Notes: generated from the letters alone by a model not told the origin. A stretch of DNA of 64,000 nt from IMGVR_UViG_3300042558_003926:186001-250000; one strand, 5' to 3'; positions 9,505 through 63,168 are shown, counted from the stretch's first letter. Numbers and translations: made by a program.

Positions 9505-10920
9505 TTAATGAGAAGAATCTCTAAATCTAACACCATCAATCTTACTCACCCTTTCATAAAGTCCTCTTTGTTTAGACTCGTTTAGATATTTAGATAGTTC
9601 TTTTACCCTATCGAAGTCTCTAGCATCGATCGCATCGTCGATCAATCTACTAATTTCTTTTTGAGACATATTAGCGTAATCTGGTTCTCCCTCCGGCTCT
9701 TCTGTTGCGGTTGGATACTCCTTGTAATCATCTGAATCTATACCAGCCATTGCCAATTCATAGTCTTTCAATTCCTGAACTATCTCATCGATAATTTCCT
9801 GAACCCCTTCTTTGGCTTTAGGATCCTCTGATAAAATCATCAGCATTAACTTTAGAAAATCATCAGCAGGCATGAGCATGAGCTTACCAAAAACATGCTC
9901 TCTTAAGTTTGGTACATCTGCAGACTCTGGAAATTCGTTGATAAAATCTCTAAGGTCTCCTGCAATCTCCGGCCCATATCTAAGATCCTCAATTTCATCT
10001 GCTAAGGTATCAGTGTTATCTATAACCATTTGAGCGGATTCTTCGTCTTCCGGAATAGCACAAGCAGCGATTAGCTCATATATTCCTTTAACTGTTTCAT
10101 GCAAAAGCATAGCAAAGTCAGTACCAAGAACGTTTATCGTTGGTCTAACTGAATCGAAAAGCTCTTCAGTTTCTTCCTTAGGAAGTTCAGAATCGTCCAT
10201 TAGCTCATCTAAAATTTGCTGTGCTAAGTCTTCCGAATCCTTAGATTCTTCTGGAGTTTCCCACTGAACTGAAACGGATCCAGAAAAACCAGATTTGTCT
10301 CTTTCCCACATCTCTTTTTGAACCTCCATTGGAATCATCCAATCGAAGAATCCAGCAATTTCAGTGATCTTATTCAGGGTAACCCGATATTCCTCACCAA
10401 CTTCTCTACCAAGGATCTCATATAAACCATCTCTAACTTCCGGAAGGTTCAACATTTTCTTGGTGTTCTTAGCTTCTCCCTGAGTTATGTTGTTTGCGAT
10501 TTTTCTCTTGTGGATTTCTGAAATAATCCCAGCGTCTTGCAATTCTTTGAATTGTGGCATTTCTGCTGGTTCTGCTGGAACATTCTCCATGCTTTTCTTC
10601 ATCTGGTCACCTTTAGGAAATTTAATTCTTAATTCAACATCATTTAGAATATCTCCATACATGGTTCTGATAGCTCTTTCTGCTAAAGCCTCTAATTGAG
10701 CTTCCTTACCTTTTTGAATAGCTTTCGCTCTAGAGACAAGACTCATGAATTGAGGGATGTCCCTTCCGTGGGTTCTTTGCAATTGAGCGTTTCTTTCCTC
10801 CGCCTTTCTCTCTATATCGGCTAGGTATTTTTTTCTTTGATCTCCCTCTCCCTCACCAGGTATTCCTGGATTTCCTCTAAGAGAAGCTTCATTTAGTCTG
10901 TCATGGAATGATTTAATCAT
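9505..10920 (-). CDS. Hypothetical protein with CTS-like N-terminal tag; putative virion protein
   Basis: MIKSFHDRLNEA; acidic and helical. Confidence 0.6.
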   Translation of the reverse strand: MIKSFHDRLNEASLRGNPGIPGEGEGDQRKKYLADIERKAEERNAQLQRTHGRDIPQFMSLVSRAKAIQKGKEAQLEALAERAIRTMYGDILNDVELRIKFPKGDQMKKSMENVPAEPAEMPQFKELQDAGIISEIHKRKIANNITQGEAKNTKKMLNLPEVRDGLYEILGREVGEEYRVTLNKITEIAGFFDWMIPMEVQKEMWERDKSGFSGSVSVQWETPEESKDSEDLAQQILDELMDDSELPKEETEELFDSVRPTINVLGTDFAMLLHETVKGIYELIAACAIPEDEESAQMVIDNTDTLADEIEDLRYGPEIAGDLRDFINEFPESADVPNLREHVFGKLMLMPADDFLKLMLMILSEDPKAKEGVQEIIDEIVQELKDYELAMAGIDSDDYKEYPTATEEPEGEPDYANMSQKEISRLIDDAIDARDFDRVKELSKYLNESKQRGLYERVSKIDGVRFRDSSH

Positions 10921-11173
10921 CGTATCTGGATTTTAGTTTTGATAAGTCGAATTTAATTGCCATTTTGCTTTTTCTTAATTCTGTCATGAATCTTTTCATA
11001 ACATCATCAATCTTAGCTTTAGGTCTAGGATCAACAGAAGGCTTGTCCCTTCTGATAGGTCCTGGCTTGGACGGAGTTGTGCCTGGGGTTGTTCCTGGCT
11101 TAATATCTGGCCTAGTCGGAGCTGTTCCGGGTCTGGTGGCCAAAAACTCATTCATTTTTGTAATTATTGCCAT
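10913..11173 (-). CDS. Small Pro-rich protein with CTS-like tag
   Basis: MAIITKMNEFL followed by PGT/P-rich repeats. Confidence 0.6.
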   Translation of the reverse strand: MAIITKMNEFLATRPGTAPTRPDIKPGTTPGTTPSKPGPIRRDKPSVDPRPKAKIDDVMKRFMTELRKSKMAIKFDLSKLKSRYDD

Positions 11174-11193
11174 TCTTTTATGATTTAGTTTTG

Positions 11194-11203
11194 AATATAT
11201 ATC
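11194..11203. promoter_or_regulatory. Putative bidirectional late promoter AATATATATC
   Basis: Near-palindromic motif in the 40-bp gap between two divergent tagged genes. Confidence 0.55.
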
Positions 11204-11213
11204 GAAAGTAAAT

Positions 11214-12752
11214 TTGTATAAAATGATGAAAAGCCTTAGCTTCCGAACTTTTTTTGAAGCTGTAGATCCTCTTAATGAGAGTCTTCAACCAGCCAAAGAT
11301 TATCTATTAAAGAAACATGCAGACAAAAAGGAGATAAAAATCTCAGATATTCCAGAGGAAGACAAGAGAAGGATTCTTCAGAACCCTAGATATATTCAGG
11401 TTCGAGATTTAACTCAGAAGAATACTGGGTATACGCTACCATTCTTAAAGTTCTATCTGGAACAGAATGCAACGCTAGAGGAACTACAGGAGATCTTCGC
11501 TCTGTTAACAAAATACAAGAACACTTTATCAGACCTTTCAATGTCTGTTGGTGACTATTCTAAATACGTACCAGGTGAGGATGACGAAGAGACTAAACCG
11601 GGATATGAACTTCTTGGTGATGAGCTAAGAAGCTTTGAAAGAAGAAAGAAGGTTAAAGATTTCTTCCAAGAGATGACTCCGAGAATGAAGAAAGAATTCA
11701 ACAAGGCATCGGAAGAAGAAATTGAGGACCTAACTGCAATATCTAACCAGTTAAAGACACTACCTGATGTTGACGGTGAGAATGCTTGGAAGTCTTTTTC
11801 TAAGAATATGAAGAAGTATGACGATACTAGAACATACACTGAATATTCAAATTCACGTACAGCATTCCTGGATATTAAAAAGGATGCTCTTAACTTTATA
11901 GAAGCATGGGGTAAAGGAGACGATGAGCTTCTAGCATCGCTGAAAAAATTAGGACCACAAGCTGGTATTCTCTATGCTAAAAACAAGTATATTGCAATGT
12001 CTGCAAGAACACCGGAAGCAAATAGAGCAGTTTGTTCTGATACTGGCTGGTGTATTAAAACGGACTCTACATTCTGGTCATACGGTGGAGGTAGAATCCA
12101 ATTAAATATTATCGATAGAAACCGTCCGGTTTCTGATCCTAAGAGTTTGCTTGGTATCACAATAAACCCAGATGGAAGTGTACACACATCCCACGATAGA
12201 CCAAATTCAAGAGTTAGCGGAAGAACTTATGTTGAAATTCTCAAGCAATATTACCCGCAGGAACTTGTTGATGCAGTTAAGGAAAGATTTGATAGAGAGG
12301 TTTCAATTAAGCTTGCTTTAGAGAAATACTTTAGAGATTCTTCCGGTCTAGACACTAAGAAAATCATAGAATCTCTAATCACATTAAGCAAAGGATTCCT
12401 ATCTGGAGCGGTTCCGCCGGAAGACTGGGAACAAATCTCAGGAACTGTTGCTGAAATTATCTTCATAGAAAGAAAACTGACCAAGAGCGAGTTCATGAAA
12501 GTATTTAGGGATCATGGAATTTTCTCAGCTGCAACTTGGCACGTTTTCGATGCTATTGTTGGCACTGATTATTCCAAAGATGATATGGAAAAAATCGGGG
12601 AATCAGTTAAGAGAAATCTGAAGAACATGCAGGATCTTATCGATCTTAAAAAACAGGGTGTCCTAGATATTAAACCGAAGGATATGGAAAGCATGGAGGA
12701 AATTATCAAAAACCGAGATGAGGTTATGTCGGAGATCTCTAAAAGAATGTAA
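11214..12752 (+). CDS. Hypothetical protein with CTS-like tag
   Basis: MKSLSFRTFFEAVDPLNES; internal TPEANRAVCSDTGWCI segment. Confidence 0.65.
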   Translation: MYKMMKSLSFRTFFEAVDPLNESLQPAKDYLLKKHADKKEIKISDIPEEDKRRILQNPRYIQVRDLTQKNTGYTLPFLKFYLEQNATLEELQEIFALLTKYKNTLSDLSMSVGDYSKYVPGEDDEETKPGYELLGDELRSFERRKKVKDFFQEMTPRMKKEFNKASEEEIEDLTAISNQLKTLPDVDGENAWKSFSKNMKKYDDTRTYTEYSNSRTAFLDIKKDALNFIEAWGKGDDELLASLKKLGPQAGILYAKNKYIAMSARTPEANRAVCSDTGWCIKTDSTFWSYGGGRIQLNIIDRNRPVSDPKSLLGITINPDGSVHTSHDRPNSRVSGRTYVEILKQYYPQELVDAVKERFDREVSIKLALEKYFRDSSGLDTKKIIESLITLSKGFLSGAVPPEDWEQISGTVAEIIFIERKLTKSEFMKVFRDHGIFSAATWHVFDAIVGTDYSKDDMEKIGESVKRNLKNMQDLIDLKKQGVLDIKPKDMESMEEIIKNRDEVMSEISKRM

Positions 12753-22588: not shown

Positions 22589-22777
22589 TTGCTAATGGAA
22601 AGGGATAGAGATCCGGTCGGTATTTTTGTAGTTTCACTACTAGTTTCATTGCTTTATATTTTCGGAACGGTTAGCAAAAAAGAGAAAGATGCTATGAACT
22701 TAAAAAATGATAGCATCAGGAAAGAAAATAAGCGTAAAGAAAAATATATACAGCATGAAGAATATACTAGACTTTAA
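22589..22777 (+). CDS. Small hypothetical membrane protein
   Basis: One hydrophobic segment; overlaps the next gene's promoter and start. Confidence 0.35.
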   Translation: MLMERDRDPVGIFVVSLLVSLLYIFGTVSKKEKDAMNLKNDSIRKENKRKEKYIQHEEYTRL

Positions 22778-23441
22778 TCAGTTCAGTGAGATCAACGAGG
22801 CATATAAGCCATCCAGTGGGATGGATTATGTGAAGAATATGATAAAAGGTGGTGTAAAATCAGCAGCAGATTTTCTTAAAAAACCTAAGGTTGTCAAAAA
22901 AACCCCCATCGATAATTCGGAATATTGGACTCTAATAACTATAATGGCATGTGAGAATTTCTCAGATCAAAAACAAGGTATGTCCGATACAGCCCAATCA
23001 ATCTACAATAGATTAGCAGTTCCAAATAAACCTTACGGAAAAACGATTAAGGAGATAATTCTTGCTAAGGGACAATATGAGCCGGTTAGTGTAGGTAAAA
23101 AAAGAGGAGCAGATTGGAATAACATAAACTCAAAAGAGAAGGCTATAACGGTATACATGAAAACCAAAAAGCTAGACAGAAATAAAGCCACCGCTGCCAT
23201 TAATAACGCTATATTGGCTCAAAAAGATCCAAAATTGGCTAAGGAAGCTGGAAAGCACGTTCAATCCAGAACGGAGTTCTTAGCTGATAAACCAAAAAGC
23301 GGAGGAGCAGCTAAACCAGTAGAGAGACAAAGTCCTAAGACTAACAATGCCTTTTTCTGGAACTATGCAGGAAAAACTAGATTCTATTCTAAGAATGATT
23401 TAGCTCCTAAGCCTAAACCAGGAAACGTTAACGTAGCTTAA
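22755..23441 (+). CDS. SleB-like cell wall hydrolase with CTS-like tag
   Basis: MKNILDFNQFSEINEA; IMACEN...QSIYNRL...YGKTIKEIILAKGQYEP; AATATATA at 22743-22750. Confidence 0.7.
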   Translation: MKNILDFNQFSEINEAYKPSSGMDYVKNMIKGGVKSAADFLKKPKVVKKTPIDNSEYWTLITIMACENFSDQKQGMSDTAQSIYNRLAVPNKPYGKTIKEIILAKGQYEPVSVGKKRGADWNNINSKEKAITVYMKTKKLDRNKATAAINNAILAQKDPKLAKEAGKHVQSRTEFLADKPKSGGAAKPVERQSPKTNNAFFWNYAGKTRFYSKNDLAPKPKPGNVNVA

Positions 23442-24016
23442 TCCTTTTTATCTTTCATGTTTTTTCTAGCTCTTTTATAAAGAGCCTTATCTGACATTTC
23501 AGTAGTTCTCCCGCCGGTTACAAATGAGTTCACTCGTGCAAATGCCCACTGTTGTGGGGTAGTTCCTGGAACATGTCCAGTTTTCCAAGCTGCATACCCT
23601 CTGCTCCAGACTTGTTTCAATATACCGAGCGGGAATCCAGTCTTATCAGATTTTTTCTTCAAAGCTTTATAGACTGGTGAATTCTTACCCATTTTTTCAT
23701 TTAGAATCTCTTCGGTTAAAGAATCATCCTCCAAAACTATCTCCTCAAATACATTATCTGGAATATTAGAAAAATCTTCATATGATAATACCATACCTTC
23801 CGTATCATCGTCTTCCTCGAACATCTCCTTATACTTCTTGGTGTATTTACTAGGTTTAGTTTCTACTGGTTTACCCTTACCTGCCTTTCTACTTTTATAA
23901 TCAGCATCCCAAGGACCATAAGCTGAAGAATCATTATCCGATTTATCCGCATGTTTCTTGATTTCCCTCTTCATAACTTCGGGATTAGTTTTTAAGTATT
24001 TCTTTGGAAGTTTCAT
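23438..24016 (-). CDS. Phage protein, DUF5824-like
   Basis: YGPWDAD; LKKKSDKTGFPLGILKQVWSRGYAAW...PQQWAFARVNSF; family name recalled from memory. Confidence 0.6.
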   Translation of the reverse strand: MKLPKKYLKTNPEVMKREIKKHADKSDNDSSAYGPWDADYKSRKAGKGKPVETKPSKYTKKYKEMFEEDDDTEGMVLSYEDFSNIPDNVFEEIVLEDDSLTEEILNEKMGKNSPVYKALKKKSDKTGFPLGILKQVWSRGYAAWKTGHVPGTTPQQWAFARVNSFVTGGRTTEMSDKALYKRARKNMKDKKD

Positions 24017-24017: not shown

Positions 24018-25106
24018 TTATTTAAGATATCCTTTTAGTTGACTTGGTCGATTAGTCATGATTAGACTAGGTTTTATGTTTTTAACTATTTTTTCCCATG
24101 CTGTCTTAGAATCTCCTCTGTAAGAAGCACCGTTTGTATTTTTGGTTCCTCCTACCGCAACTACCATGGGATAAACACCCTTAGTTCTCAGAGAATCCGA
24201 CATATATCCATTAAGTATATAGGAGTCAGAGTCACTGAACTGATATTCGAAAAACCCCGGGGTTGTTTTTGATACTATATCATCAGCCGAGATCTTAGAT
24301 TTTATTTTCCCCACATTAGTGGTGGGGAGAATGGGCATCCATTTGATACCCATTGTCTTAACTATGGATGGAGGATAGTATGATTGACCCTTTGCTACTA
24401 TTTGATTTTCTATCCCTCTAAGCATTCCAATTTTATTGATCACTGACAATTCTTTAGCGTCGCATTTATCTAATTGTAGCATTGTTTTGGATGAGTATTT
24501 TTTTATAAGATTCACAACATCCTGAAGGGAACATATTTTCTGGGATGGGTCGGAATTATAAGAAATCACTTTAACCTGGCTCCAATTCAGATTCTGTATC
24601 TTTCCTTTACCATTAGTTTTAGAATCAAGACGGGAGTCATGGAAAAGAACAGGAACACCATCGGCTGTTATTTGTATATCTATTTCTATCATGTCTATCT
24701 TGGCCTTGATATTCTCCTCGATGTTCTTTAGACAATTCTCTGCCTTGGATGCACCGGGACCATCCCATTTACCAGCATGTGAGCAGATCATAGTTGATGT
24801 GTTCGTGGAAGGAATAAAGTCCTGTTTATTACCTGGTGTTAAATTAGTAGCCGTATTTGTAGGTGTATTTGTAGGTGTGTTGGAATAAGTTGTTTGCTGG
24901 GCTACTTTTTTTCTAGCCTGTGGATGTCTAGAATCAAGAATGTCCGTTGCCGTCTGGTTACCTGATAAGGACTTCCAGTCCTTTATATCTTTACCCTTGG
25001 TCATCCATACGTTATTAATCACTTTGTATTGATACGGATCTCCTGGGGTTTTATAGATCTTCTCAGATTCTAAAATAAACTCGTTAAATTCTAAGATTAT
25101 TCTCAT
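24018..25106 (-). CDS. Glycerophosphodiester phosphodiesterase-domain protein with CTS-like tag
   Basis: MRIILEFNEFILES; CSHAG...AENCL...MIEIDIQITADGVPVLFHD; GDPD-like C-terminus IMTNRP. Confidence 0.8.
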   Translation of the reverse strand: MRIILEFNEFILESEKIYKTPGDPYQYKVINNVWMTKGKDIKDWKSLSGNQTATDILDSRHPQARKKVAQQTTYSNTPTNTPTNTATNLTPGNKQDFIPSTNTSTMICSHAGKWDGPGASKAENCLKNIEENIKAKIDMIEIDIQITADGVPVLFHDSRLDSKTNGKGKIQNLNWSQVKVISYNSDPSQKICSLQDVVNLIKKYSSKTMLQLDKCDAKELSVINKIGMLRGIENQIVAKGQSYYPPSIVKTMGIKWMPILPTTNVGKIKSKISADDIVSKTTPGFFEYQFSDSDSYILNGYMSDSLRTKGVYPMVVAVGGTKNTNGASYRGDSKTAWEKIVKNIKPSLIMTNRPSQLKGYLK

Positions 25107-29342: not shown

Positions 29343-30179
29343 ATGAACCTAAAACACATAAAGAAATACTCCATAAACGAATCCGAAGATGCTTTGAAAT
29401 CCGGTGGAATAACTTTAACCGATGACCAGATTGACTATCTAAACAGCGAAGGAGTAGATCTTGTGGTGAAGGTAAATAAAAATCTTAAGAAAAACGGTGG
29501 GCTTCCATGCATATCAAATAAAAAATGGGGGCAAAACTCCATATCTATTTCAATAGGTTTAAAAGAATTAGGTATATCAGAAAATATAGATAAGCTTGAA
29601 AAATATTCGGATAGCGATATAATCCCAAAATATCCTATCTCCGAAAATAATATGCAATTCCAATATTTTTTAGATCCTTCTCTAGCTTCGGGTAGTTATA
29701 AATTGAATAATTATAACTTCTCCCAGTACGGAGCTCAAACTATAAGGGTAGACATTAATTTTGAAACATTCGAAGATATCACAAGGATTATTAACGAATC
29801 GATTACTGAGATCTTTCAGGACTTCAAAAAGGTTAGAATTTTTGTCAATTGGAATTTGAAAAGACTCCCATCGATATCTTCGCATATAAAAAAAGAGGTG
29901 AAAGAGATTTACTGTAATCTGCTTGATCAATTTTTGGAAAATGGTAGGATAGAAGGAGACGACATAGACGAAAGCTTACATGCTATTCTCCTCGGTGATG
30001 CTTTAGAAAAAAATCAAGACGAGATCGAAAAATTTAATTCTCTACCCGAAGAAGCGAGAAAATCCCTTCTCTCCGGGTGGAGCCAAATACTTAAAAGCGA
30101 CGATCTAACGATATCTCTTAGAAAAATAGAAGCTCTTAAGAAATACATTAGCGTAAAAAAATCCTGGGATTTTATTTAG
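29343..30179 (+). CDS. Hypothetical protein with CTS-like tag
   Basis: MNLKHIKKYSINES; C-terminus RKIEALKKYISVKKSWDFI. Confidence 0.65.
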   Translation: MNLKHIKKYSINESEDALKSGGITLTDDQIDYLNSEGVDLVVKVNKNLKKNGGLPCISNKKWGQNSISISIGLKELGISENIDKLEKYSDSDIIPKYPISENNMQFQYFLDPSLASGSYKLNNYNFSQYGAQTIRVDINFETFEDITRIINESITEIFQDFKKVRIFVNWNLKRLPSISSHIKKEVKEIYCNLLDQFLENGRIEGDDIDESLHAILLGDALEKNQDEIEKFNSLPEEARKSLLSGWSQILKSDDLTISLRKIEALKKYISVKKSWDFI

Positions 30180-30223: not shown

Positions 30224-30478
30224 ATGGAACATATAGAACTGTACGAGAATTTCAGTAAGCCTGAAAAAAAAGAGTTTACTGATGCAGAGATCCAGTACTA
30301 CCAGAAGCTCTGGGACTGGTTACCCCAGAAGTATAGATTCAATCCTTTTTTCTCTAAGTTATGGAATCAGGTTAAGGATAAAAAGTACCTAACGAAAAAA
30401 CAATGGACCCAGCTAGAATATCTTCTTAAGAATGGCAAATCGCAATACGAAGCAGGAATTCTACCGTCTAATTATTGA
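30224..30478 (+). CDS. Small protein with CTS-like tag
   Basis: MEHIELYENF. Confidence 0.65.
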   Translation: MEHIELYENFSKPEKKEFTDAEIQYYQKLWDWLPQKYRFNPFFSKLWNQVKDKKYLTKKQWTQLEYLLKNGKSQYEAGILPSNY

Positions 30479-30481: not shown

Positions 30482-30865
30482 ATGAAAAATATAGAACTAT
30501 ACGAATCTTTTGAGGAAGAAGATCCAAAGGAACTTTTAAATGATTTTATAAAAGAGATATGGCCGGATATAGAAAAGTACCTGGAGTCAGCGGGATTGGA
30601 GAGTGATTACGTTTGGATTGACGAGGAAGAATTCGCAATTGAATATTGGCCAACCAGCATGGATGGATCTGTACCTAACAGAATTTCCTATATAGTAGAC
30701 GATTTAAAAACCATTCTGGAGAAAGAAATGGGTACAGGTATATCGTGGAGATTTGCACCAAACGGGAACTGTCAAAGACTTATCTTTGTTCTGGATTCTC
30801 CTATAGAAACTGGGTCTGTCACGGACAAAATACTTAAGGTTAAAAAGGCTTTAAAGTTCACATAA
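30482..30865 (+). CDS. Hypothetical protein with CTS-like tag
   Basis: MKNIELYESF; C-terminus DKILKVKKALKFT. Confidence 0.65.
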   Translation: MKNIELYESFEEEDPKELLNDFIKEIWPDIEKYLESAGLESDYVWIDEEEFAIEYWPTSMDGSVPNRISYIVDDLKTILEKEMGTGISWRFAPNGNCQRLIFVLDSPIETGSVTDKILKVKKALKFT

Positions 30866-33776: not shown

Positions 33777-33959
33777 ATGATACTTAAATTCCAAGAATTT
33801 ATCACCGAGTCCAAAAAAGAGGACAAAAAAATCACAAAATCCAAATCGAAGAAGTCCACAAATTGCAATGAATGTGGACAGAAAATTAGAGAGTGTTCCT
33901 GTCAGGATTATGGTGGAGGGTATCTAGGGCCAGAGATGCCATCAAATTTACTTTACTAA
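33777..33959 (+). CDS. Small Cys-containing protein with CTS-like tag
   Basis: MILKFQEFITES; CNEC...CSC; GATATATA at 33764-33771. Confidence 0.6.
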   Translation: MILKFQEFITESKKEDKKITKSKSKKSTNCNECGQKIRECSCQDYGGGYLGPEMPSNLLY

Positions 33960-45316: not shown

Positions 45317-45769
45317 TTATGCTACTTTAGTAAGTGTTGCATCATAGTCTCCCTCGACTCCTTTAATCTCTCCGGTCCCACTAAAAGCTATACTTGATGC
45401 TTTTGTCTTAACCTTGGATGCAAGAGTGTTTAGAGTTGCATCGTCCAATTTAAATACCTTATCTGTGTTGTCCTTAACGTAGATGTCTCCGGTCTCCTTG
45501 CTTTTCCAAACCACTTCAACAGCTATAGGTCCTTCATACCAAGTTACAAGGAGTTTTTTAACTTTGACATTTACCTTATAATAAAGTTCTGTGTTGTTAT
45601 AGATGAAAACTATTCTACCGGTCAAATCCTTTGGCTTACCAGTTTTGGGATCCTTACCCCCGTGTGTTCTGGCAGAAACTATCTCTACCCCCTTCCACTC
45701 TACTGATTCTAAAATTGGTTGATTTAAAGATTCGTTTACGAAATCTTGATATCCCTTAATGTTTTCCAT
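45317..45769 (-). CDS. Hypothetical protein with CTS-like tag
   Basis: MENIKGYQDFVNESLN; AATATATAC at 45790-45798 on the minus strand. Confidence 0.65.
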   Translation of the reverse strand: MENIKGYQDFVNESLNQPILESVEWKGVEIVSARTHGGKDPKTGKPKDLTGRIVFIYNNTELYYKVNVKVKKLLVTWYEGPIAVEVVWKSKETGDIYVKDNTDKVFKLDDATLNTLASKVKTKASSIAFSGTGEIKGVEGDYDATLTKVA

Positions 45770-47899: not shown

Positions 47900-48361
47900 T
47901 TATCCTATGTAAGTTTTGATGAATTCATCAACACCCATTAATTCTGTGTGACCGTGATGGTCGATACAAAGCAATTTACCTTCAACTAGGTCAAATAAAC
48001 GAGCTTCTTCGTAAACTTGGAAAGAATCACTACCGTTGTTCTCATTACCAAGTCTACCATCTTTAGCTATGTAGTAAGCATAATCCTCTGTGTTAGTGCT
48101 ATTCGGCACCGCCTCAAATTCTCCATTCTCGTCATGAATTACATAACCCATTCCTGTTACATCGACATCGAAGATTTTTAATTCGTCTTCAGTTCCAGGA
48201 AATTCGGCAGCAAGTCTGTCAATAGCACTTTGCAATTTCTCTTTCTGAACTTCGTCGATGATTCCTACTGCTGCATAAGCATCTCCCTGAAAGCAAGTAG
48301 CATATCTTCTACCGGATCTTTGTGTGGGACCGAAGTTCTCAAATAATCTAAGGTGTTTCAT
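47900..48361 (-). CDS. Hypothetical protein with CTS-like tag
   Basis: MKHLRLFENF; GATATATAA at 48382-48390 on the minus strand. Confidence 0.65.
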   Translation of the reverse strand: MKHLRLFENFGPTQRSGRRYATCFQGDAYAAVGIIDEVQKEKLQSAIDRLAAEFPGTEDELKIFDVDVTGMGYVIHDENGEFEAVPNSTNTEDYAYYIAKDGRLGNENNGSDSFQVYEEARLFDLVEGKLLCIDHHGHTELMGVDEFIKTYIG

Positions 48362-48423: not shown

Positions 48424-49098
48424 TTATATCATACCCTTAAATCCATGGTAAGCCCTTATCAATTCCAGTCTCTTTATTTCTTCCGGCCCCACCCACTCGA
48501 ACTCTGGTTTGTAGAGTAGCATCTGATCCTCTAACGGGATCTCGCTCCAAAGTGACTCTACAGCCTCCTGATAGCTCATCTCATCTTCCATTTGGTAGAA
48601 TATACTCCTGAGTGTATCCTCAGAAACCGGATTATTTACACATTTGAACATCCCTCCGATTTTCTGAGGGGCACCTTCGAGAGAGGTGAGCTGGTTGTTG
48701 CTACAATTGAAATCGCTACCGATTTCCTGTGGTGCTCCCTCCAGTGAGGTAAGCTGGTTGTTGTTACAAAAGAAATCAAGGCCAACTCTCTTTGGTGATC
48801 CCACCAGCGAGGTGAGCTGATTGTCGTCACAATAGAAACCCTCAGCCTCCTGTGGTGCTCCCTCCAGTGAGGTGAGACGGTTGTCCTCGCATGAAAAATA
48901 TGCTCTCACTACACCAAATCTAACTCCTTTAAAATCTGTCAGATCCTGTCCAGTGCAGCTAAAGCTCCCATCCACATCAACAAGTCCGGTATGAGGATTA
49001 ATAGTCCATTTATCAGAGCACTCATCAAGCCACTCGATCTGCTCCGGGGTAAGCTCTACCGCACTCTCAAACATCTTATATGTCTTTAGATTCTTCAT
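48424..49098 (-). CDS. LRR-like repeat protein, paralog 6 of 6 (4 modules)
   Basis: MKNLKTYKMFES tag; xxNQLTSLEGAPQxVGxxFxC repeats; conserved C-terminus. Confidence 0.85.
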   Translation of the reverse strand: MKNLKTYKMFESAVELTPEQIEWLDECSDKWTINPHTGLVDVDGSFSCTGQDLTDFKGVRFGVVRAYFSCEDNRLTSLEGAPQEAEGFYCDDNQLTSLVGSPKRVGLDFFCNNNQLTSLEGAPQEIGSDFNCSNNQLTSLEGAPQKIGGMFKCVNNPVSEDTLRSIFYQMEDEMSYQEAVESLWSEIPLEDQMLLYKPEFEWVGPEEIKRLELIRAYHGFKGMI

Positions 49099-49100
49099 TC

Positions 49101-50156
49101 CTATATCATACCCTTAAATCCTTGGTAAGCCTTTAACGCTTCCAGCTTCCTTCCCTCCTCTGGACTCACCCACTCGAACTCTGGTCTGTACAGCAGAGCC
49201 TGATCCTCTATAGGGATCTCATTCCAGAGTGATTCCATAGCCTGGATGTAACTCTTCCCTTTCTCCATGGGGTATAATATTCTCCTGAGTGTCTCTTCAG
49301 AAACCGGATTGCTCTCGGAATAGAAAATCCCATTAATCTCCCGTGGTGCCCCATCCAGTGAGGTGAGCTGGTTGTTTTCGCAGAAGAAACCCCCTCTGAC
49401 CCGCTGTGGTGCTCCCTCCAGTGAGGTGAGCTGGTTGTTCCTGCAAATGAAATCCTCTCCAACCTCCTGTGGTGCTCCCTCTAGTGTGGTGAGCTGATTG
49501 TGGTCACAACTGAACCAAAATCCAACCTTCTGTGGTGCTCCCACCAGTGAGGTGAGCTGGTTGTTGCTACAATTGAAAGCCTGTCCAACACTCTGCGGTG
49601 CTCCCTCCAGAGAGGTGAGCTGGTTGTTGGTACACTTGAAACTCCCTCTGACCCGCTGTGGTGCTCCCACCAGTGATGTGAGCCGGTTGTTCTCACAATA
49701 GAAATACCCAGCAATCTCCTGTGGTGCTCCCACCAGTGATGTGAGCCGGTTGTTCTGGCAATAGAAATACCCACCAACATCCTGTGGTGCTCCCTCCAGT
49801 GAGGTGAGCTGGTTGTTGCTACAATTGAAATCCTGCCCAACACTCTGTGGTGCTCCCACCAGTGAGGTGAGCTGGTTGTCGTGGCAATAGAAATCCCCTC
49901 CAACATCCTGTGGTGCTCCCTCCAGTGAGGTGAGCTGATTGTTCCGGCAAATGAAATCCTCACTGACCACTCCAAACCTAACGTCTTTAAAATCTGTCAG
50001 ATCCTGTTCAGAGCAATCGAAATCCCCATCCACATCAACCAGTCCGGTTTGTGGATTAATAGTCCATTCATCAGTGCACTTGTCCAACCACTCGATCTGC
50101 TCTGGTGTAAGCTCTACCGCACTCTCAAACATCTTATATGTCTTTAGATTCTTCAT
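49101..50156 (-). CDS. LRR-like repeat protein, paralog 5 of 6 (10 modules)
   Basis: Same architecture. Confidence 0.85.
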   Translation of the reverse strand: MKNLKTYKMFESAVELTPEQIEWLDKCTDEWTINPQTGLVDVDGDFDCSEQDLTDFKDVRFGVVSEDFICRNNQLTSLEGAPQDVGGDFYCHDNQLTSLVGAPQSVGQDFNCSNNQLTSLEGAPQDVGGYFYCQNNRLTSLVGAPQEIAGYFYCENNRLTSLVGAPQRVRGSFKCTNNQLTSLEGAPQSVGQAFNCSNNQLTSLVGAPQKVGFWFSCDHNQLTTLEGAPQEVGEDFICRNNQLTSLEGAPQRVRGGFFCENNQLTSLDGAPREINGIFYSESNPVSEETLRRILYPMEKGKSYIQAMESLWNEIPIEDQALLYRPEFEWVSPEEGRKLEALKAYQGFKGMI

Positions 50157-50157
50157 T

Positions 50158-50844
50158 TTATATCATACCTTTAAATCCTTGGTAAGCTCTTAACGCTTCC
50201 AGCTTCCTTCTCTCCTCTGGACTCACCCACTCGAACTCTGGTCTGTACAACAGAGTCTGATCTTCTAACGGAATCTTGCTCCAGAGTGATTCCACAGCCT
50301 GCATGTGACTCTCCCCTTTCTTCATGAGGGAGAATATTCTCTTGAGTGTTTCATTAGAAACTGGGTTGCCGTAGCAATAGAAAATCAATCTCACCCGCTG
50401 TGGTGCTCCCACTAGAGAAGTGAGCTGGTTGTTGTCACATCTAAAATCCCCTTCAACCTCCCGTGGTGCACCCTCCAGTGAGGTGAGCTGATTGTTGTTA
50501 CAATAGAAATCCCATCCAACCTTCTGTGGTGCTCCCTCCAGTGTGGTGAGCTGGTTGTCACTACAACTGAAACCCCCACCAACCCGCTGTGGTGCTCCCT
50601 CCAGTGTGGTGAGCTGGTTGCCGTAGCAATAGAAATACCCACTGACCACTCCAAACCTAACGTCTTTAAAATCTGGCAGATCCATACGAGAGCAGCCAAA
50701 ATCCCCATCCACATCAACCAGTCCGGTTTGTGGATTGAGTGTCCAGGTACCATCAATGCACTCGTCAAGCCACTCGATCTGCTCTGGTGTAAGTTCTCCT
50801 ACACTCTCAAACAGTTGGCGATATGTCTTTAGATTCTTCATCAT
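50158..50844 (-). CDS. LRR-like repeat protein, paralog 4 of 6 (4 modules)
   Basis: Same architecture; start at 50844 or 50841. Confidence 0.85.
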   Translation of the reverse strand: MMKNLKTYRQLFESVGELTPEQIEWLDECIDGTWTLNPQTGLVDVDGDFGCSRMDLPDFKDVRFGVVSGYFYCYGNQLTTLEGAPQRVGGGFSCSDNQLTTLEGAPQKVGWDFYCNNNQLTSLEGAPREVEGDFRCDNNQLTSLVGAPQRVRLIFYCYGNPVSNETLKRIFSLMKKGESHMQAVESLWSKIPLEDQTLLYRPEFEWVSPEERRKLEALRAYQGFKGMI

Positions 50845-50848
50845 AATA

Positions 50849-51661
50849 CTATATCATACCTTTAAATCCTTGGTAAGCTCTTAACGCTTCCAGTTTTCTT
50901 ACCTCCTCTGGACTCACCCACTCGAACTCTGGTCTGTACAACAGAGCCTGATCCTCTACTGGAATCTCGTTCCAGAGTGTCTCCACAGCCTGAATGTAAC
51001 TCTCCCCTTTCTTCATGAGGGAGAATATGCTCTTAAGAGTCTCCACAGAAACTGGGTTGTTCTCACAATAGAAATAATCCCGTCCGATCTCCAGTGTTGC
51101 TCCCTCCAATGAGGTGAGCTGGTTGTCCCCACAATAGAAATACCCATCCACCTTCTGTGGTGCTCCCTCCAGTGTGGTGAGCTGATTGTTCTCACAATTG
51201 AACCTCCCTCCAACCCGCTGTGGTGCTCCCTTCAGTGAGGTGATCTGGTTGCCGTTACACTCGAAATACCCTCCAACCTTCTGTGGTGCTCCCTCCAGTG
51301 TGGTGAGCTGATTGTTGTTACAAAAGAAACCACTTCTGACCCGCTGTGGTGCTCCCACCAGTGAGGTGAGCTGGTTGTTGCTACAACTGAAATGCTCTCC
51401 AACCTCCTGTGGCGATCCCTCCAATGAGGTGAGCTGGTTGTTCCTACAATTGAAACTCCCACTCACCACTCCAAACTTAACGCCTTTAAAATCTGTCAGG
51501 TCCTGTCTAAAGCAATCGAAGTCTCCTTTCACATCAACCAGTCCTGTTCGTGGATTGATCTTCCAGGTACCATCAGTGAACTTGTCCAGCCACTCGATCT
51601 GCTCTGGTGTGAGCTCTTGTGTGTTCTCAAACATTTGGCGATATGTCTTTAGATTCTTCAT
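50849..51661 (-). CDS. LRR-like repeat protein, paralog 3 of 6 (6 modules)
   Basis: Same architecture. Confidence 0.85.
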   Translation of the reverse strand: MKNLKTYRQMFENTQELTPEQIEWLDKFTDGTWKINPRTGLVDVKGDFDCFRQDLTDFKGVKFGVVSGSFNCRNNQLTSLEGSPQEVGEHFSCSNNQLTSLVGAPQRVRSGFFCNNNQLTTLEGAPQKVGGYFECNGNQITSLKGAPQRVGGRFNCENNQLTTLEGAPQKVDGYFYCGDNQLTSLEGATLEIGRDYFYCENNPVSVETLKSIFSLMKKGESYIQAVETLWNEIPVEDQALLYRPEFEWVSPEEVRKLEALRAYQGFKGMI

Positions 51662-52408
51662 TTATATCATACCTTTAAATCCTTGGTAAGCCTGGAGAGC
51701 TTCCAGCTTTCTTCTCTCCTCTGGACTCACCCACTCGAACTCTGGTCTGTACAGCAGAGCCTGATCCCCTAATGGAATCTCACCCCAGAGAGACTCCACA
51801 GCCTGAAGATAGCTCTCACCCTTCGTCATGGTGGAGAAGATGCTCTTGAGTGTCCCTTTGGAAACTGGGTTGCCCTCACAATTGAAATGCCGTCCGATCT
51901 CCCGTGGTGCTCCCTCCAGTGAGGTGAGCTGGTTGTTACTACAATAGAAATACCTCCCAACCTTCTGTGGTGCTCCCTCCAGTGTGGTGAGCTGATTTCC
52001 CTCACAAATGAAATCACCCTCAACCTTCTGTGGTGCCCCCACCAGTGAGGTGAGCTGGTTGTTGTCACACCTGAAACGCTCTCCTACCTCCTGTGGTGCC
52101 CCCACCAGTGAGGTGAGCTGGTTGTTGTTACAATAGAAACCCTCACCAACCTTCTGTGGTGCTCCCTCCAGTGAGGTGAGCTGGTTGTAGTCACAACCGA
52201 AATCCTTACTCACCACTCCAAACCTAATCCCTTTGAAATCCGTCAGATCATGTTCAGAGCAATCGAAGTCTCCTTTCACATCAACCAGTCCTGTTCGTGG
52301 ATTGATCTTCCAGGTACCATCAATGCACTCGTCAAGCCACTCGATCTGCTCTGGTGTGAGCTCTCCCACACTCTCAAACAGTTGGCTATATGTCTTTAGA
52401 TTCTTCAT
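51662..52408 (-). CDS. LRR-like repeat protein, paralog 2 of 6 (5 modules)
   Basis: Same architecture. Confidence 0.85.
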   Translation of the reverse strand: MKNLKTYSQLFESVGELTPEQIEWLDECIDGTWKINPRTGLVDVKGDFDCSEHDLTDFKGIRFGVVSKDFGCDYNQLTSLEGAPQKVGEGFYCNNNQLTSLVGAPQEVGERFRCDNNQLTSLVGAPQKVEGDFICEGNQLTTLEGAPQKVGRYFYCSNNQLTSLEGAPREIGRHFNCEGNPVSKGTLKSIFSTMTKGESYLQAVESLWGEIPLGDQALLYRPEFEWVSPEERRKLEALQAYQGFKGMI

Positions 52409-53281
52409 TTATATCATGCCTTTAAATCCAGCGTAAGCCTTAATGACATCCAGCTTCTTACCAAACTCTGGACTCACCCACTCGAACTCTGGTCTGTATA
52501 ACAGAGCCTGATCATCTAATGGAATCTCGTTCCAGAGTGTCTCCACAGCCTGCAGGTAGCTATTCCCTTCCTTCGTGAGGGAGAATATGCTCTTGAGTGT
52601 CTCTTCAGAAACGGGGTTTTTCTCACAATAGAAACCCCCTCCAACCTTTTGTGGTGCTCCCTCCAGAGAGGTAAGTTGGTTTCTATCGCAATTGAAACTT
52701 CCACCGACCTCCTGTGGTGCTCCCTCCAGTGAGGTGAGGTTGTTGCCCTCACAAAGGAAACGCTCTCCTACCTCCTGTGGTGCCCCCTCCAGCGAGGTGA
52801 GCTGGTTGTTGTTACAACTGAAACCTCTTCCGACCCGCTGTGGTGCTCCCTCCAGTGAGGTGAGCTGGTTGTCGCTGCAATAGAAATCATGTCCAACCCG
52901 CTGAGGTGCTCCCTCTAGGGAGATGAGCTGGTTGTCCTCACAATTGAAATTCGCTCCGACTTCCTGAGGTGCTCCCACCAGCGAGGTGAGCTGGTTGTAC
53001 CTACAATAGAAATCCTCTCCAACCTTCTGTGGTGCTCCCTCTAGGGAGATGAGCTGGTTGTTGCTGCAATAGAAATACCCACTGACCACTCCAAACCTAA
53101 TCCCTTTGAAATCTGTCAGGTCCTGTTCAGAGCAATTGAAATCCCCATCCACATCAACAAGTCCGGTTTGTGGATTGATCTTCCAGGTACCATCAGTGCA
53201 CTTGTCCAACCACTCGATCTGCTCTGGTGTAAGCTCTCCCACACTCTCAAACAGTTGGCGATACGTCTTCAGATTTTTCAT
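52409..53281 (-). CDS. LRR-like repeat protein, paralog 1 of 6 (7 modules)
   Basis: Same architecture. Confidence 0.85.
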   Translation of the reverse strand: MKNLKTYRQLFESVGELTPEQIEWLDKCTDGTWKINPQTGLVDVDGDFNCSEQDLTDFKGIRFGVVSGYFYCSNNQLISLEGAPQKVGEDFYCRYNQLTSLVGAPQEVGANFNCEDNQLISLEGAPQRVGHDFYCSDNQLTSLEGAPQRVGRGFSCNNNQLTSLEGAPQEVGERFLCEGNNLTSLEGAPQEVGGSFNCDRNQLTSLEGAPQKVGGGFYCEKNPVSEETLKSIFSLTKEGNSYLQAVETLWNEIPLDDQALLYRPEFEWVSPEFGKKLDVIKAYAGFKGMI

Positions 53282-54410: not shown

Positions 54411-55205
54411 ATGAAACATGTTAAAATATTTGAAGAGTATATCCCAGGAGGCAGAGCCTCTGGCAAGAGCCTAAAGGATCTCGCCAAGATCCACGGTGTA
54501 GGAATCAAGAGCCTGGAGAAGCAGCTGAAGGTTGGCGTAGCCGTTGAGATGGAACACACCAACAGTGAGGCCAAGGCCGAGGAGATAGCTATGGATCACC
54601 TAGCAGAAAACCCACGGTATTACACTCGGCTTATCCGGAAGGGATTCGTGGATGAACCAAAGGCTCTGAAGATCTATAAGGAACTCTATGAGGGAGACTG
54701 GTTTGATAATCTAAGTTACCACCCGGCAAACCAACCAGATGGACCTGATCCAACAAGGGAGATCGAATACACCCCGGCCCAACAGAAGTTTACCACTATG
54801 TCATTCCTAGGTGATAGCAGCATTGGCTTTACTCTGCTGCATGGCAAGGACTCCGTGGGAGGTGGAGCTTGGGTGCTTAACATCGATGAGGTTCCGGATG
54901 ACTATCAGCTGATCACTGTCTATGGAGATGATGAAGAGAATGAGACGGAGATTGATGAGGACACTTGCATCAACTACGCTACTGATCTCTGGGATGCTAG
55001 AGATAGAGATGTTGAGAATGTAGGAGAAGGCATGGAAGGCTGGGAAGATGGTAAGTTGCTATGTAAGCTAGATGCTGAACTGGCAGAGGATTTGATTGGC
55101 ACTATGGAGTTCGTGATGAGAAGAGGTAATTACGGTCCTGGTTCTAATATCAAGAAAAAAGTCTCTGGTGCTGTCTATGAGCTAAGCAAACTATTTGAGC
55201 TGTGA
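54411..55205 (+). CDS. DUF5661-like domain protein with CTS-like tag and acidic C-terminal domain
   Basis: MKHVKIFEEY; KQLKVGVAVEMEHT...AEEIAMDHLAENPRYYTRL; family name recalled from memory. Confidence 0.7.
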   Translation: MKHVKIFEEYIPGGRASGKSLKDLAKIHGVGIKSLEKQLKVGVAVEMEHTNSEAKAEEIAMDHLAENPRYYTRLIRKGFVDEPKALKIYKELYEGDWFDNLSYHPANQPDGPDPTREIEYTPAQQKFTTMSFLGDSSIGFTLLHGKDSVGGGAWVLNIDEVPDDYQLITVYGDDEENETEIDEDTCINYATDLWDARDRDVENVGEGMEGWEDGKLLCKLDAELAEDLIGTMEFVMRRGNYGPGSNIKKKVSGAVYELSKLFEL

Positions 55206-61929: not shown

Positions 61930-62201
61930 AGTTAATCACCATAATAAAAGAAACCGTAATCGGAGATAACCAAAACCAAGATAAGTTATTCTTTGAGTAT
62001 TGTGACGAGTATTCAATAGAACACAAAATAATAAACGAAAACTTAGAAACCTCATCATATCCTGATATAGAGTTTAAATCAGGTCCAGTTGCTTTAAGTA
62101 ATATGCTAAAGGAAAGATTTGGCTACACACAAGAAGAAATCAACGAGGAGTTTCCTCAAATAAAAGAAGCCTTAGAAGAAGATACAGCCAATCAAAACTA
62201 A
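61926..62201 (+). CDS. Hypothetical protein
   Basis: ATGA overlap. Confidence 0.55.
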   Translation: MKLITIIKETVIGDNQNQDKLFFEYCDEYSIEHKIINENLETSSYPDIEFKSGPVALSNMLKERFGYTQEEINEEFPQIKEALEEDTANQN

Positions 62202-62257
62202 GAAACCGGGTGCCTCTTCCCGCCATAAGAGGATTGTTTGTTTGTTTTGATTATGGG

Positions 62258-62285
62258 AAAGGTCCAGTTTATCTGGACCTTTTTC
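62258..62285. terminator. Bidirectional intrinsic terminator
   Basis: AAAGGTCCAG-TTTAT-CTGGACCTTT. Confidence 0.75.
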
Positions 62286-62334
62286 TATTTGCGTGGATTT
62301 ATTATTGCTAAGAGCTGCGGGGAAACACCGCGGG

Positions 62335-63168
62335 TTATTTCAACTGAGTAAGAACCCCTTGAATCTCCGACGGTGAAAGATCTAGTTCCTTATTGTGTAG
62401 TACTTTAGATAAACCACCAAAGATAGATTGTGCTAATGTTTTTCCTTTAATTGCTGAATCAAATTGAGAACCAACAACAGAACTAGAAGGCATTGATGTT
62501 GAATCAGGAAGAGGAGTTGTAGGTATTGGACCTAAAGAACCACTTACTGCTTTAGCACCTTTAATTAGATCGTTTTCAAATTCTTTAGTTCTAGTAGTTC
62601 TGAAGTAATCAATAAATCCATATAGAGTTTTCGAATCCAATTTTCTAACATTAACACCAACTCTATCTCCTTCTCCTGATTGCTGGTCGTTAGTGTTACC
62701 TTCTATTGTAGTAAATGTTCTTTTCTGCGGATCAACACCTAGGACTATACCAGTATGACCCAAACCTTTACCAGGTCTACTCATAATAAATATCTGTCCA
62801 GGTCTTACTAGGTTAGGATCCTTCCTTGCTTGGTCTATAGTAATCTTTGCATCTGCTGGTGCTTTAGTCCAGTGATTCATAACTCCCGCGGTTTTTGGGA
62901 GAGGATTCGTTTGACCTAATTGTTTACTTAATTCGTTAAACACGTAGTAGACAAAAGCCATACACCAAGGATAGCCTGCTCCTAATCCAGTAGATGCAAG
63001 ATAAGCTGAAACCATTTGACCTCTGTTAGAACCTTTTGGTTCTTCTTTAACATTTCTGTTTATTGAAAGAATCTTTGCAAACTTGTCTCCATCACCACCT
63101 GGGTTTTTTAAAGAGAACTGAGCCTCGTTTACAAAATCGCAAAAGTTCTTTATTCTTTTCTCTACCAT
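62335..63168 (-). CDS. CHAP-domain peptidoglycan amidase/peptidase with CTS-like tag
   Basis: IKNFCDFVNEA; YPWCMAFV (Cys), GHTGIV (His), TIEGNT; GATATATAG at 63189-63197 on the minus strand. Confidence 0.85.
   Translation of the reverse strand: MVEKRIKNFCDFVNEAQFSLKNPGGDGDKFAKILSINRNVKEEPKGSNRGQMVSAYLASTGLGAGYPWCMAFVYYVFNELSKQLGQTNPLPKTAGVMNHWTKAPADAKITIDQARKDPNLVRPGQIFIMSRPGKGLGHTGIVLGVDPQKRTFTTIEGNTNDQQSGEGDRVGVNVRKLDSKTLYGFIDYFRTTRTKEFENDLIKGAKAVSGSLGPIPTTPLPDSTSMPSSSVVGSQFDSAIKGKTLAQSIFGGLSKVLHNKELDLSPSEIQGVLTQLK

Follow-up and report, generated by a model that had tools for sequence, protein, structure and literature searches.

[quoted passage not shown] The tags were first noted in a window of 64,000 nucleotides, which corresponds to bases 186001-250000 of a 289.6-kb IMG/VR contig (IMGVR_UViG_3300042558_003926). 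An earlier note had listed 26 such N-termini and proposed that the tag is a portable module for packaging cargo, an interpretation that is well supported by comparative evidence, though packaging, cleavage and injection remain inferences from sequence.

A shared N-terminal tag on largely unrelated proteins

All 26 N-termini of the earlier note were confirmed at their coordinates, two of them with GTG starts (32264 and 37818) and three with a start codon downstream of the longest ORF start (11226, 22755 and 36531). At least one further tagged gene is present at 34291 (MSNSEFLEEILFE, 10.2 bits), and another is cut by the end of the window (63379-64000, with its start at 64227 and tag MTHRVKSYDEFVNE). 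The strict pattern ^M..[ILVM]..[FY]..[FYLM] occurs at 16 of 128 first-ATG ORFs of at least 60 aa, in comparison to 3 of 258 internal ATGs, two of which are the true starts (Fisher p = 4e-6). With a profile HMM of the tag, 23 of 100 gene starts in the window score at least 8 bits, against 1 of 256 internal Met peptides.

The tagged genes and the associated promoter motif are listed below. Bit scores are those of the tag profile unless a Pfam family is named, promoter refers to the motif RATATATA, and an arrow marks the proposed cleavage position after Glu.

9505-10920, minus strand: tagged gene, 471 aa, MIKSFHDRLNE↓AS, 10.0 bits; no known domain; downstream of 11173 in the same transcription direction and conserved with its 86-aa neighbour in a related contig (L071)
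10913-11173, minus strand: tagged gene, 86 aa, MAIITKMNE↓F, Pro/Thr-rich, 12.0 bits; GATATATA at 11196-11203, 22 nt upstream
11194-11203, no strand assigned: example of the late-promoter-like motif RATATATA, here palindromic and serving both strands
11226-12752, plus strand: tagged gene, 508 aa, MKSLSFRTFFE↓AVDPLNE↓S, 9.9 bits; AATATATA at 11194-11201, the other arm of a bidirectional late-promoter-like element
22755-23441, plus strand: tagged SleB-like cell-wall hydrolase, 228 aa, MKNILDFNQFSEINE↓A; Pfam Hydrolase_2 at 25.6 bits, just under the cut-off of 27, and a PHROG endolysin hit; promoter at 22743
24018-25106, minus strand: tagged glycerophosphodiester phosphodiesterase (GDPD), 362 aa, MRIILEFNEFILE↓S; Pfam GDPD 63 bits; promoter at 25118
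29343-30179, plus strand: tagged gene, 278 aa, MNLKHIKKYSINE↓S, 15.5 bits; promoter at 29330
30224-30478, plus strand: tagged gene, 84 aa, MEHIELYE↓NF, 18.5 bits; in an operon behind 29343
30482-30865, plus strand: tagged gene, 127 aa, MKNIELYE↓SF, 23.2 bits
31713-32264, minus strand: tagged gene, 183 aa, GTG start, (M)RHIRSFKKLNE↓S, 11.0 bits; promoter at 32288
33777-33959, plus strand: tagged gene, 60 aa, MILKFQEFITE↓S, 8.9 bits, closest in the window to T4 MKTYQEFIAE; promoter at 33764
34291-34497, plus strand: tagged gene absent from the earlier note, 68 aa, MSNSEFLEEILFE↓G; promoter at 34276
36531-37016, plus strand: tagged gene, 161 aa, MRYIQLFE↓SY, 15.2 bits; no Pfam or PHROG hit; promoter at 36518
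37003-37821, plus strand: tagged gene, 272 aa, MRYIKLFE↓YF, 22.8 bits, possible P-loop kinase; weak Pfam CPT hit of 17.7 bits, below cut-off; promoter at 36977
37818-38633, plus strand: tagged phosphoribosyltransferase, 271 aa, GTG start, (M)RYIKLFE↓YF; Pfam Pribosyltran 31 bits
38767-39222, minus strand: tagged gene, 151 aa, MENIVHFRKMFE↓S, 10.5 bits; in an operon behind 39886
39230-39886, minus strand: tagged gene, 218 aa, MKYINLFE↓AF, 18.2 bits; promoter at 39917
39923-41017, minus strand: tagged gene, 364 aa, MKNIKGFKEFNSGYIYE↓N, 20.0 bits, with a weak LRR-like repeat region
45317-45769, minus strand: tagged gene, 150 aa, MENIKGYQDFVNE↓S, 19.2 bits; promoter at 45798
47900-48361, minus strand: tagged gene, 153 aa, MKHLRLFE↓NF, 20.4 bits; promoter at 48390
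48424-53281, minus strand: six tandem tagged leucine-rich-repeat (LRR) paralogs with starts at 49098, 50156, 50841, 51661, 52408 and 53281, MKNLKTY(K/RQ/SQ)(M/L)FE↓(S/N); Pfam LRR_4, 51-70% BLASTP identity between copies, GC 0.47-0.48; one promoter at 53294 ahead of the array
54411-55205, plus strand: tagged DUF5661 protein, 264 aa, MKHVKIFE↓EY; Pfam DUF5661 52 bits; promoter at 54396; tagged homologs lie directly after the capsid gene in the related loci L141 and L142, and homologs also occur in T4-like cyanophages
62335-63168, minus strand: tagged CHAP peptidoglycan hydrolase, 277 aa, MVEKRIKNFCDFVNE↓A, 22.1 bits; Pfam CHAP 46 bits; promoter at 63197
63379-64000, minus strand: C-terminal part of a tagged SLT-like transglycosylase (282 aa, weak Pfam SLT hit), whose start and tag MTHRVKSYDEFVNE↓T lie just outside the window at 64227

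The description of these genes as unrelated is largely right, as BLASTP after trimming of the first 20 residues links only the six LRR paralogs and, weakly, the gene at 41017. The assignments of papain-like and kinase functions in the earlier note, on the other hand, were not confirmed, with no Pfam hit for the former and only the weak CPT hit for the latter.

The tag is conserved as a peptide and not as DNA. Synonymous codons at the conserved positions are used roughly in background proportions, and the identical tag peptides of 37003 and 37818 differ at 5 synonymous sites in 30 nt. The tagged N-termini also have a higher helical hydrophobic moment than untagged N-termini (0.47 against 0.29, p = 5e-9), and in an AF2 model of the GDPD the tag (residues 1-14) is predicted to be unpacked, with pLDDT below 50. 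In addition, the same GDPD catalytic domain occurs with at least five tag variants, or with an N-terminal membrane anchor instead of a tag, indicating that the tag is portable.

A late-promoter-like motif upstream of tagged genes

The motif RATATATA occurs 26 times in the window, against 10.8 +/- 3.1 expected, and 22 of the 26 lie 4-50 nt (mostly 4-23) upstream of a start codon. In 220 kb of the genome, 20 of 33 tagged genes have the motif directly upstream, in comparison to 31 of 254 untagged genes (p = 3e-9). Thirteen of the 33 tagged genes lack their own motif, though most of these are plausibly in operons. The earlier note overstated the association in placing the tag on nearly every gene behind this motif, since it also precedes the endolysin (6193), the tail fibre (43049), a lipoprotein and, outside the window, the baseplate genes and the prohead protease. 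This sharing with virion structural genes suggests that RATATATA behaves as the late promoter. One tagged gene, however, is an adenylate kinase inside the ribonucleotide-reductase operon with no late motif, which is an odd place for cargo.

Head genes in the same genome and in relatives

Outside the window, at contig positions 43277-47065, the genome encodes a protease-scaffold fusion of 676 aa and, next to it, a Gp23 capsid protein of 579 aa (143 bits). The protease (L373:641-2671, where L373 is a stretch of this genome) is of the gp21 family, with 32 bits to Pfam Peptidase_S77 (cut-off 27) and 31 bits to the S80 family (cut-off 23.4). BLASTP against T4 gp21 gives E = 2e-9 with the His and Ser motifs, GELxHP and SSR(G/A)xGS, aligned: GELDHP aligns with GELNHP, and ISSRAAGS with VSSRGLGS.

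The expected substrates of this protease carry the motif found in the tags. All 33 tags have [LIVMF]-x-E with the Glu at residue 3-15, mostly 8-13, followed most often by Ser. The scaffold part contains about 14 tandem Y-LAE↓N repeats plus LNE↓S and INE↓A sites, and [LIVMF]NE[SANT] is 16-fold denser in the scaffold than in the rest of the genome. The capsid protein starts MKLINE↓Q and has HSLNE↓S near residue 45, and these capsid motifs are conserved in about 40 distinct homologs. The same class of motif is carried by T4 gp22, gp23, gp24, gp67 and gp68, as read from NC_000866. Given that [LIVMF]-x-E is short, and that 104 of 252 untagged genes also have one in their first 20 residues, the cleavage-site argument rests on position and conservation and not on the motif alone.

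In a wider collection of sequences, nearly all hits to the tag pattern are ORF starts, and the positions left free in the pattern still prefer K5, [IVL]11, N12 and E13. The neighbours of those tags are T4 core genes, namely Portal_T4, gp32, UvsW, Peptidase_S77 and Gp23. In 80 loci chosen by the capsid gene alone, 86 of 1067 N-termini are tagged, against 12 of 7482 internal Met peptides. The tagged genes cluster at positions -3 to -1 and +1 relative to the capsid gene, that is, between the protease and the capsid gene or directly after the capsid gene. This resembles the place of T4 genes 67 and 68, which lie between portal gene 20 and protease gene 21. The order portal, protease, capsid protein holds in 73-79 of the 80 related loci, and Portal_T4 scores 222 bits in one locus (L020), while the portal of this genome lies upstream of the stretch that was read. 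Among GenBank phages, no cultured phage carrying this tag was found, and the cultured or named distant relatives PTm1, MaF61, Lak-A1 and LR756500 show no tag within 20 kb of their capsid genes.

Proposed mechanism of capsid targeting

In combination, these observations support, with fairly high confidence, the interpretation of the tag as a capsid-targeting propeptide of the T4 type. In the proposed mechanism, the RATATATA promoters drive both the virion structural genes and about 30-45 tagged genes late in infection. The tag, an exposed and amphipathic N-terminal peptide of 8-17 residues with the consensus M-K-H-I-K-L-F-E-x-F-[IVL]-N-E in the wider clade, would bind the assembling scaffold core, which would be built from the protease-scaffold fusion protein on the gp20-type portal, so that the tagged protein ends up enclosed by the gp23-type shell. 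The gp21-family serine protease would then cut after Glu in [LIVMF]-x-E, shredding the scaffold at its LAE repeats, removing the propeptide of the capsid protein and clipping off the tags. The mature cargo would stay in the head with the DNA and be ejected into the next host cell. This cargo includes three peptidoglycan hydrolases, a GDPD, a phosphoribosyltransferase, P-loop proteins, six LRR proteins and many unknowns. Binding to the core, cleavage, retention, ejection and all cargo functions are inferred.

A broader possibility, about as likely as not, is that a large clade of uncultured T4-related phages of Bacteroidota, from about 30 kb contigs to genomes over 400 kb, uses one portable 13-residue address (MKHIKLFEQF[IV]NE) to load an open-ended, fast-turning-over arsenal of enzymes and binding proteins into the capsid and inject it with the DNA. 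In this genome, that arsenal would be more than a tenth of all genes. If so, the injected proteins of thousands of uncultured phages, including new anti-defence and host-takeover proteins, could be read directly from sequence, and the tag would also be a ready-made tool for packaging foreign proteins in Bacteroidota phages.

Alternative explanations

It is possible, though unlikely, that the tag brings proteins into the prohead core only as assembly or filler components that, like T4 gp67, gp68 and gp22, are degraded or expelled at maturation and are not delivered as working effectors. In line with this, the tagged genes of relatives occupy a slot resembling that of T4 genes 67/68, some tagged proteins are small, acidic or low-complexity, such as the 86-aa Pro/Thr-rich protein, and several contain further internal [LIVMF]-x-E sites. 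However, many tagged proteins are intact enzymes with confident catalytic domains (GDPD, CHAP and phosphoribosyltransferase) in addition to the LRR arrays, and an enzyme fold has no use as scaffold filler. T4 also packages working enzymes such as Alt by the same route (PMC5694885).

It is more doubtful that the tag sends proteins to the tail or baseplate, the membrane or periplasm, or another late intracellular structure. Three tagged proteins are peptidoglycan hydrolases, which in many phages are tail-associated, and the cargo island also holds a tail-fibre gene. Nevertheless, the tag is amphipathic and charged and is not a Sec, Tat or lipoprotein signal, and the true lipoprotein and signal sequences in the window look different. 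In loci chosen by the tail-fibre domain, only 13 of 1314 N-termini are tagged, in comparison to 60 of 1067 in capsid-selected loci at the same threshold, and the baseplate and fibre proteins of this genome are untagged.

There is little to favour the conserved start being an RNA or translation signal, for example a downstream enhancer for the very short or absent leaders of late mRNAs in a host without Shine-Dalgarno-based initiation, or a recombination cassette that moves promoter and first codons together. The promoter motif ends only 4-23 nt before the start codon, so leaders are very short, the codons are A/T-rich, and Leu at position 6 uses CTA more often than background (39% against 16%). 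Synonymous codons at the conserved positions otherwise follow background usage, however, and substitutions are conservative at the protein level (I/L/V, F/Y, K/R). Tagged genes inside operons, with no promoter of their own, keep the tag, while untagged late genes with the same promoter and the same short leaders do without it. Furthermore, the motif matches the capsid and scaffold sites, which are internal to those proteins.

Common descent of one protein family, or chance in an A/T-rich genome, is very unlikely, for although six of the 26 are true paralogs and Lys/Asn/Ile-rich N-termini are common in low-GC genomes, the other roughly 20 proteins share no similarity beyond residue 20 and carry different Pfam domains, and internal Met peptides from the same proteins almost never match.

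Comparison with known packaging systems

The closest known system is that of the T4 internal proteins IPI, IPII and IPIII (and Alt), which carry the capsid targeting sequence and are processed by the gp21 prohead protease (PMC3012670; PMC5694885). Both have an N-terminal tag of about 10 residues on otherwise unrelated proteins, ending in hydrophobic-x-Glu, as well as a gp21-family protease, a gp23-family capsid protein, a gp20-family portal (here in relatives), a scaffold rich in L-x-E sites and, as the promoter motif suggests for this phage, late expression. In NC_000866, IPII and IPIII read MKTYQEFIAE↓A and IPI reads ...ITE↓A. The IPII/IPIII peptide scores 8.5 bits with the tag profile and IPI scores 6.4 bits, while at 8 bits or more only 3 of 7482 internal control peptides pass. 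Direct similarity is seen between T4 MKTYQEFIAE and both MILKFQEFITE in the window and MKTLKTYNQFIAE in relatives. The two differ in scale, with at least 33 and probably about 45 tagged genes in 220 kb against a handful in T4, and in the tag itself, which here carries an extra N-terminal turn (MKHI-). The cargo comprises recognisable enzymes and a six-copy LRR array rather than small basic proteins, and the protease and scaffold are one fused polypeptide. The phage also has a Bacteroidota host and a different late-promoter motif, RATATATA, where that of T4 is probably TATAAATA. Packaging is proven for T4 and not for this phage.

The giant phages phiKZ, 201phi2-1 and SPN3US, whose ejection and inner-body proteins are processed by the S80 prohead protease, package tens of different proteins with the DNA, and a related protease cuts after Glu in a three-residue motif (PMC5694885). 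In those phages the propeptides are long and dissimilar, no short portable consensus tag has been defined, and the motif is A/S/G-x-E, whereas the tags described here are short and end in L/I/V/M/F-x-E. Their cargo includes a virion RNA polymerase, which was not seen here, and although the protease of this genome also passes the Pfam S80 cut-off, its head genes are clearly closer to those of T4.

Genomic context and likely host

The viral contig IMGVR_UViG_3300042558_003926 is 289,651 bp in length, and the window (contig positions 186001-250000) has a GC content of about 0.37 and contains no tRNAs. A Bacteroidota host is likely, as the window encodes a cohesin protein with a type-IX-secretion C-terminal sorting domain and lipoprotein-type signals. 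The nearest capsid proteins in GenBank belong to uncultured huge phages, the Prevotella Lak megaphages, and phages of Flavobacterium, Tenacibaculum and Chryseobacterium. However, there are no close relatives among GenBank phages, as the capsid protein is at most 45% identical, to LR756500 and the Lak megaphages, and Dda helicase hits are at most 30% identical. A search of the window against Rfam gave no hit.

A shared N-terminal tag

All 26 of the tagged N-termini listed in an earlier note are present, and two more can be added, the gene at 34291 and a gene cut by the window end, whose tag lies at 64227. A strict tag pattern is found at 16 of 128 ORF starts, against 3 of 258 internal ATGs (p = 4e-6), while a profile of the tag gives 23 of 100 gene starts against 1 of 256 internal Met peptides at 8 bits. 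Beyond residue 20, only the six LRR paralogs at 48424-53281 are related, with 41017 weakly linked. Pfam confirms GDPD, PRTase, CHAP, LRR and DUF5661, and nearly confirms the SleB-like hydrolase, whereas the "papain-like" and "kinase" labels of the earlier note are not confirmed. A PHROGs search with 20 tagged proteins returned nothing except the SleB-like hydrolase, and the ESM Atlas returned only viral hypothetical clusters for the two large conserved tagged proteins.

Conservation of the tag is at the peptide level. Two genes share the identical decapeptide MRYIKLFEYF but differ at five synonymous sites, and across 135 tag DNAs, codon choice at the conserved positions follows background usage. 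In addition, the tags have a higher helical hydrophobic moment than other N-termini, and in an AlphaFold model of the tagged GDPD, residues 1-14 are an unpacked peptide ahead of folded domains.

In the 220 kb of the genome that were recovered (287 ORFs), 33 genes score at least 9 bits, 26 of them in the window, and about ten more late genes have weaker versions ending in INE or LFE. The cut-off of 9 bits was used for the counts because a cut-off of 6-8 bits picks up the clamp loader (MKNIQNILLTEKYRP) as a false positive. The window is therefore the main cargo island of the genome. One of the tagged genes sits in an unexpected place, as an adenylate-kinase-family protein inside the ribonucleotide-reductase operon (positions 347-973 of the retrieved stretch L213, contig 128426) carries a good tag (MGQIKYFEQFLNE, 12.7 bits) without a late-promoter motif.

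Features of the window other than single tagged genes are as follows.

3358-5283 (-) and 5337-6167 (-): a protein with a signal peptide, a cohesin domain and a type-IX-secretion C-terminal sorting domain, next to an untagged GH19 endolysin with a peptidoglycan-binding domain.
33006-33758 (+) and 23438-24016 (-): an untagged M28-family peptidase and a DUF5824 protein, inside the cargo island.
41339-43036 (-): a tail-fibre-like protein, whose first 115-143 residues are conserved in more than 500 IMG/VR stretches while the rest varies; it sits between divergent late promoters at 43049/43057.
48424-53281 (-): the six tandem LRR paralogs, with GC 0.47-0.48 against about 0.37 elsewhere and a repeat unit of roughly NQLTSLEGAPQxVGxxFxC; an independent ENA assembly of the same phage ends inside them, near window position 49919.

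The RATATATA promoter motif

RATATATA occurs 26 times in the window against 10.8 expected, and 22 copies lie upstream of a start codon, most of them 4-23 nt away. Over the recovered 220 kb, 51 genes have the motif within 45 nt upstream, and 20 of those are among the 33 tagged genes (p = 3e-9). The others include the prohead protease-scaffold gene, several baseplate genes, the tail fibre and the endolysin. The motif therefore appears to behave as the late promoter, with tagged genes as one class of late gene, and the claim of the earlier note that nearly every gene behind the motif is tagged is an overstatement. Tagged genes without their own motif mostly follow another tagged gene on the same strand. 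For the second promoter class mentioned in the earlier note, only a hint was found. TAnnTTTG, the Bacteroidota -7 promoter type, lies 15-22 nt upstream of the first genes of untagged plus-strand blocks (14035, 18515, 46519 and 55827) and may represent this class.

Distribution of the tag among T4-related phages

Nearly all hits to the tag in the wider collection are ORF starts. The positions left free in the search pattern still show strong preferences (K5, [IVL]11, N12 and E13), giving the consensus MKHIKLFEQF[IV]NE. The recurrent neighbours of these tags are T4 core genes, namely Portal_T4, gp32, UvsW, a split family-B polymerase, Peptidase_S77 and Gp23, and many genes of the present genome have 40-80% identical counterparts in those loci. 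The family-B DNA polymerase is split into an exonuclease-part gene of 468 aa (L214:4493-5899, in a second retrieved stretch) and a polymerase-part gene of 382 aa (L213:10770-11918) about 15 kb apart, and the same split is seen in related contigs.

As an independent sample, 80 loci were chosen only by similarity to the capsid protein, and the present contig was not among them. These loci show a conserved order of portal, protease-scaffold and capsid protein. Among them, 86 of 1067 N-termini score at least 6 bits, against 12 of 7482 internal peptides (p = 2e-65). The tagged genes sit between the protease and capsid gene, or directly after the capsid gene (36 of 78 loci), resembling the place of T4 genes 67 and 68, which lie between portal and protease. 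The gene directly after the capsid gene often begins MKRVKSYNEFIAE or MKTLKTYNQFIAE, while T4 IPII/IPIII begin MKTYQEFIAE (NC_000866). As a control, loci chosen by a tail-fibre domain have only 13 tagged N-termini of 1314.

In contrast, no tags were found near the capsid genes of the cultured or named distant relatives PTm1, MaF61, Lak-A1 (read with TAG as sense) and LR756500, and thus no published virion proteome could be brought to bear. A DNA-level search for the tag in GenBank phages gave only noise, plus weak hits in huge uncultured phages. No tag-bearing cultured phage was found, nor was a description of this tag found in the literature searched, although that coverage is incomplete.

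The head module

The head module of this genome was reached by walking about 145 kb leftwards from the window, first through replication and nucleotide-metabolism genes, then through fibre and baseplate genes. It encodes a 676-aa protein whose N-terminal domain is a gp21-family protease (Peptidase_S77 32 bits, S80 31 bits). BLASTP against T4 gp21 gives E = 2e-9, with the His and Ser motifs aligned. The remainder of this protein is a scaffold-like region with about 14 tandem YSxY-LAE-N repeats and several LNE|S and INE|A sites. The capsid protein is a 579-aa Gp23 protein (143 bits) beginning MKLINE|QE and carrying HSLNE|S near residue 45, and both features are conserved across about 40 distinct homologs. 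Three more tag-like genes follow the capsid gene. Elsewhere in the genome, to the left of the window (contig about 170-171.5 kb; L126:575-2043, in a third retrieved stretch), there is a 303-aa half-size paralog of the Gp23 capsid protein, 26-28% identical to the C-terminal half of clade capsid proteins, next to a homolog of Tad6.

In the T4 record, gp22, gp23, gp24, gp67 and gp68 carry the same class of sites, including LAE|N and LAE|S in gp22, although the three-residue motif is common by itself. All T4 internal head proteins join the core through the CTS (PMC5694885), and the T-even internal proteins have been described as diverse defence proteins that share only the CTS (PMC3012670).

Portability of the tag and candidate cargo

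Homologs of the tagged GDPD fall into two classes. In one class, the catalytic domain is found behind at least five tag variants: MRIILEFNEFILES, MSKILNFDEFLFES, MIKILDFTSFINEA, MKHIKLFEDY fused directly to the domain, and MKLKSFTQFIES. In the other class, the same domain is found behind an N-terminal membrane anchor. No relative of the membrane-anchored class was found in bacterial genomes by the method used, and so the class could not be assigned as cellular or viral. While the true endolysin (GH19 with a peptidoglycan-binding domain) is untagged, three further wall hydrolases (CHAP, SLT-like and SleB-like) are tagged. This fits a role at entry rather than at lysis, though this remains an inference.

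Taken together, the tag is real, and the interpretation put forward in the earlier note, that it directs proteins into the capsid, is the best explanation. In the absence of direct evidence for packaging, cleavage or ejection, it is likely, but not established, that the tag is a capsid-targeting, protease-removed propeptide, and there is less confidence that the cargo is delivered and acts in the next host. On this reading, it is a strongly expanded form of the T4 internal-protein system in an uncultured clade and not a new kind of system. Proteins that travel inside the capsid act before any phage gene is expressed and therefore decide the first minutes of infection, the classic case being T4 IPI*, which blocks the GmrSD restriction enzyme (PMC3012670). 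Outside T4 and a few giant phages, such proteins can be found only by proteomics of cultured phages. Here, a recognizable sequence address may mark them in uncultured genomes, together with the protease that should remove it. This provides a list of about 30-45 candidate injected proteins for this phage, including three cell-wall hydrolases, a GDPD, a phosphoribosyltransferase and six LRR proteins, a way to mine hundreds of related contigs for the same class, and a natural experiment on how far a capsid can be used as a protein-delivery device.

CTS-like tags may be general in the wider T4 superfamily. The T4-like cyanophage Synechococcus phage DSL-LC02 (L125:4923-5243) has a small gene starting MKSFNQFLSES, next to a DUF5661-containing protein, and Flavobacterium phage immuto (L124) has genes just upstream of the terminase starting MADNFNLRSFLTENKL and MENFDLKKFLVENKL.
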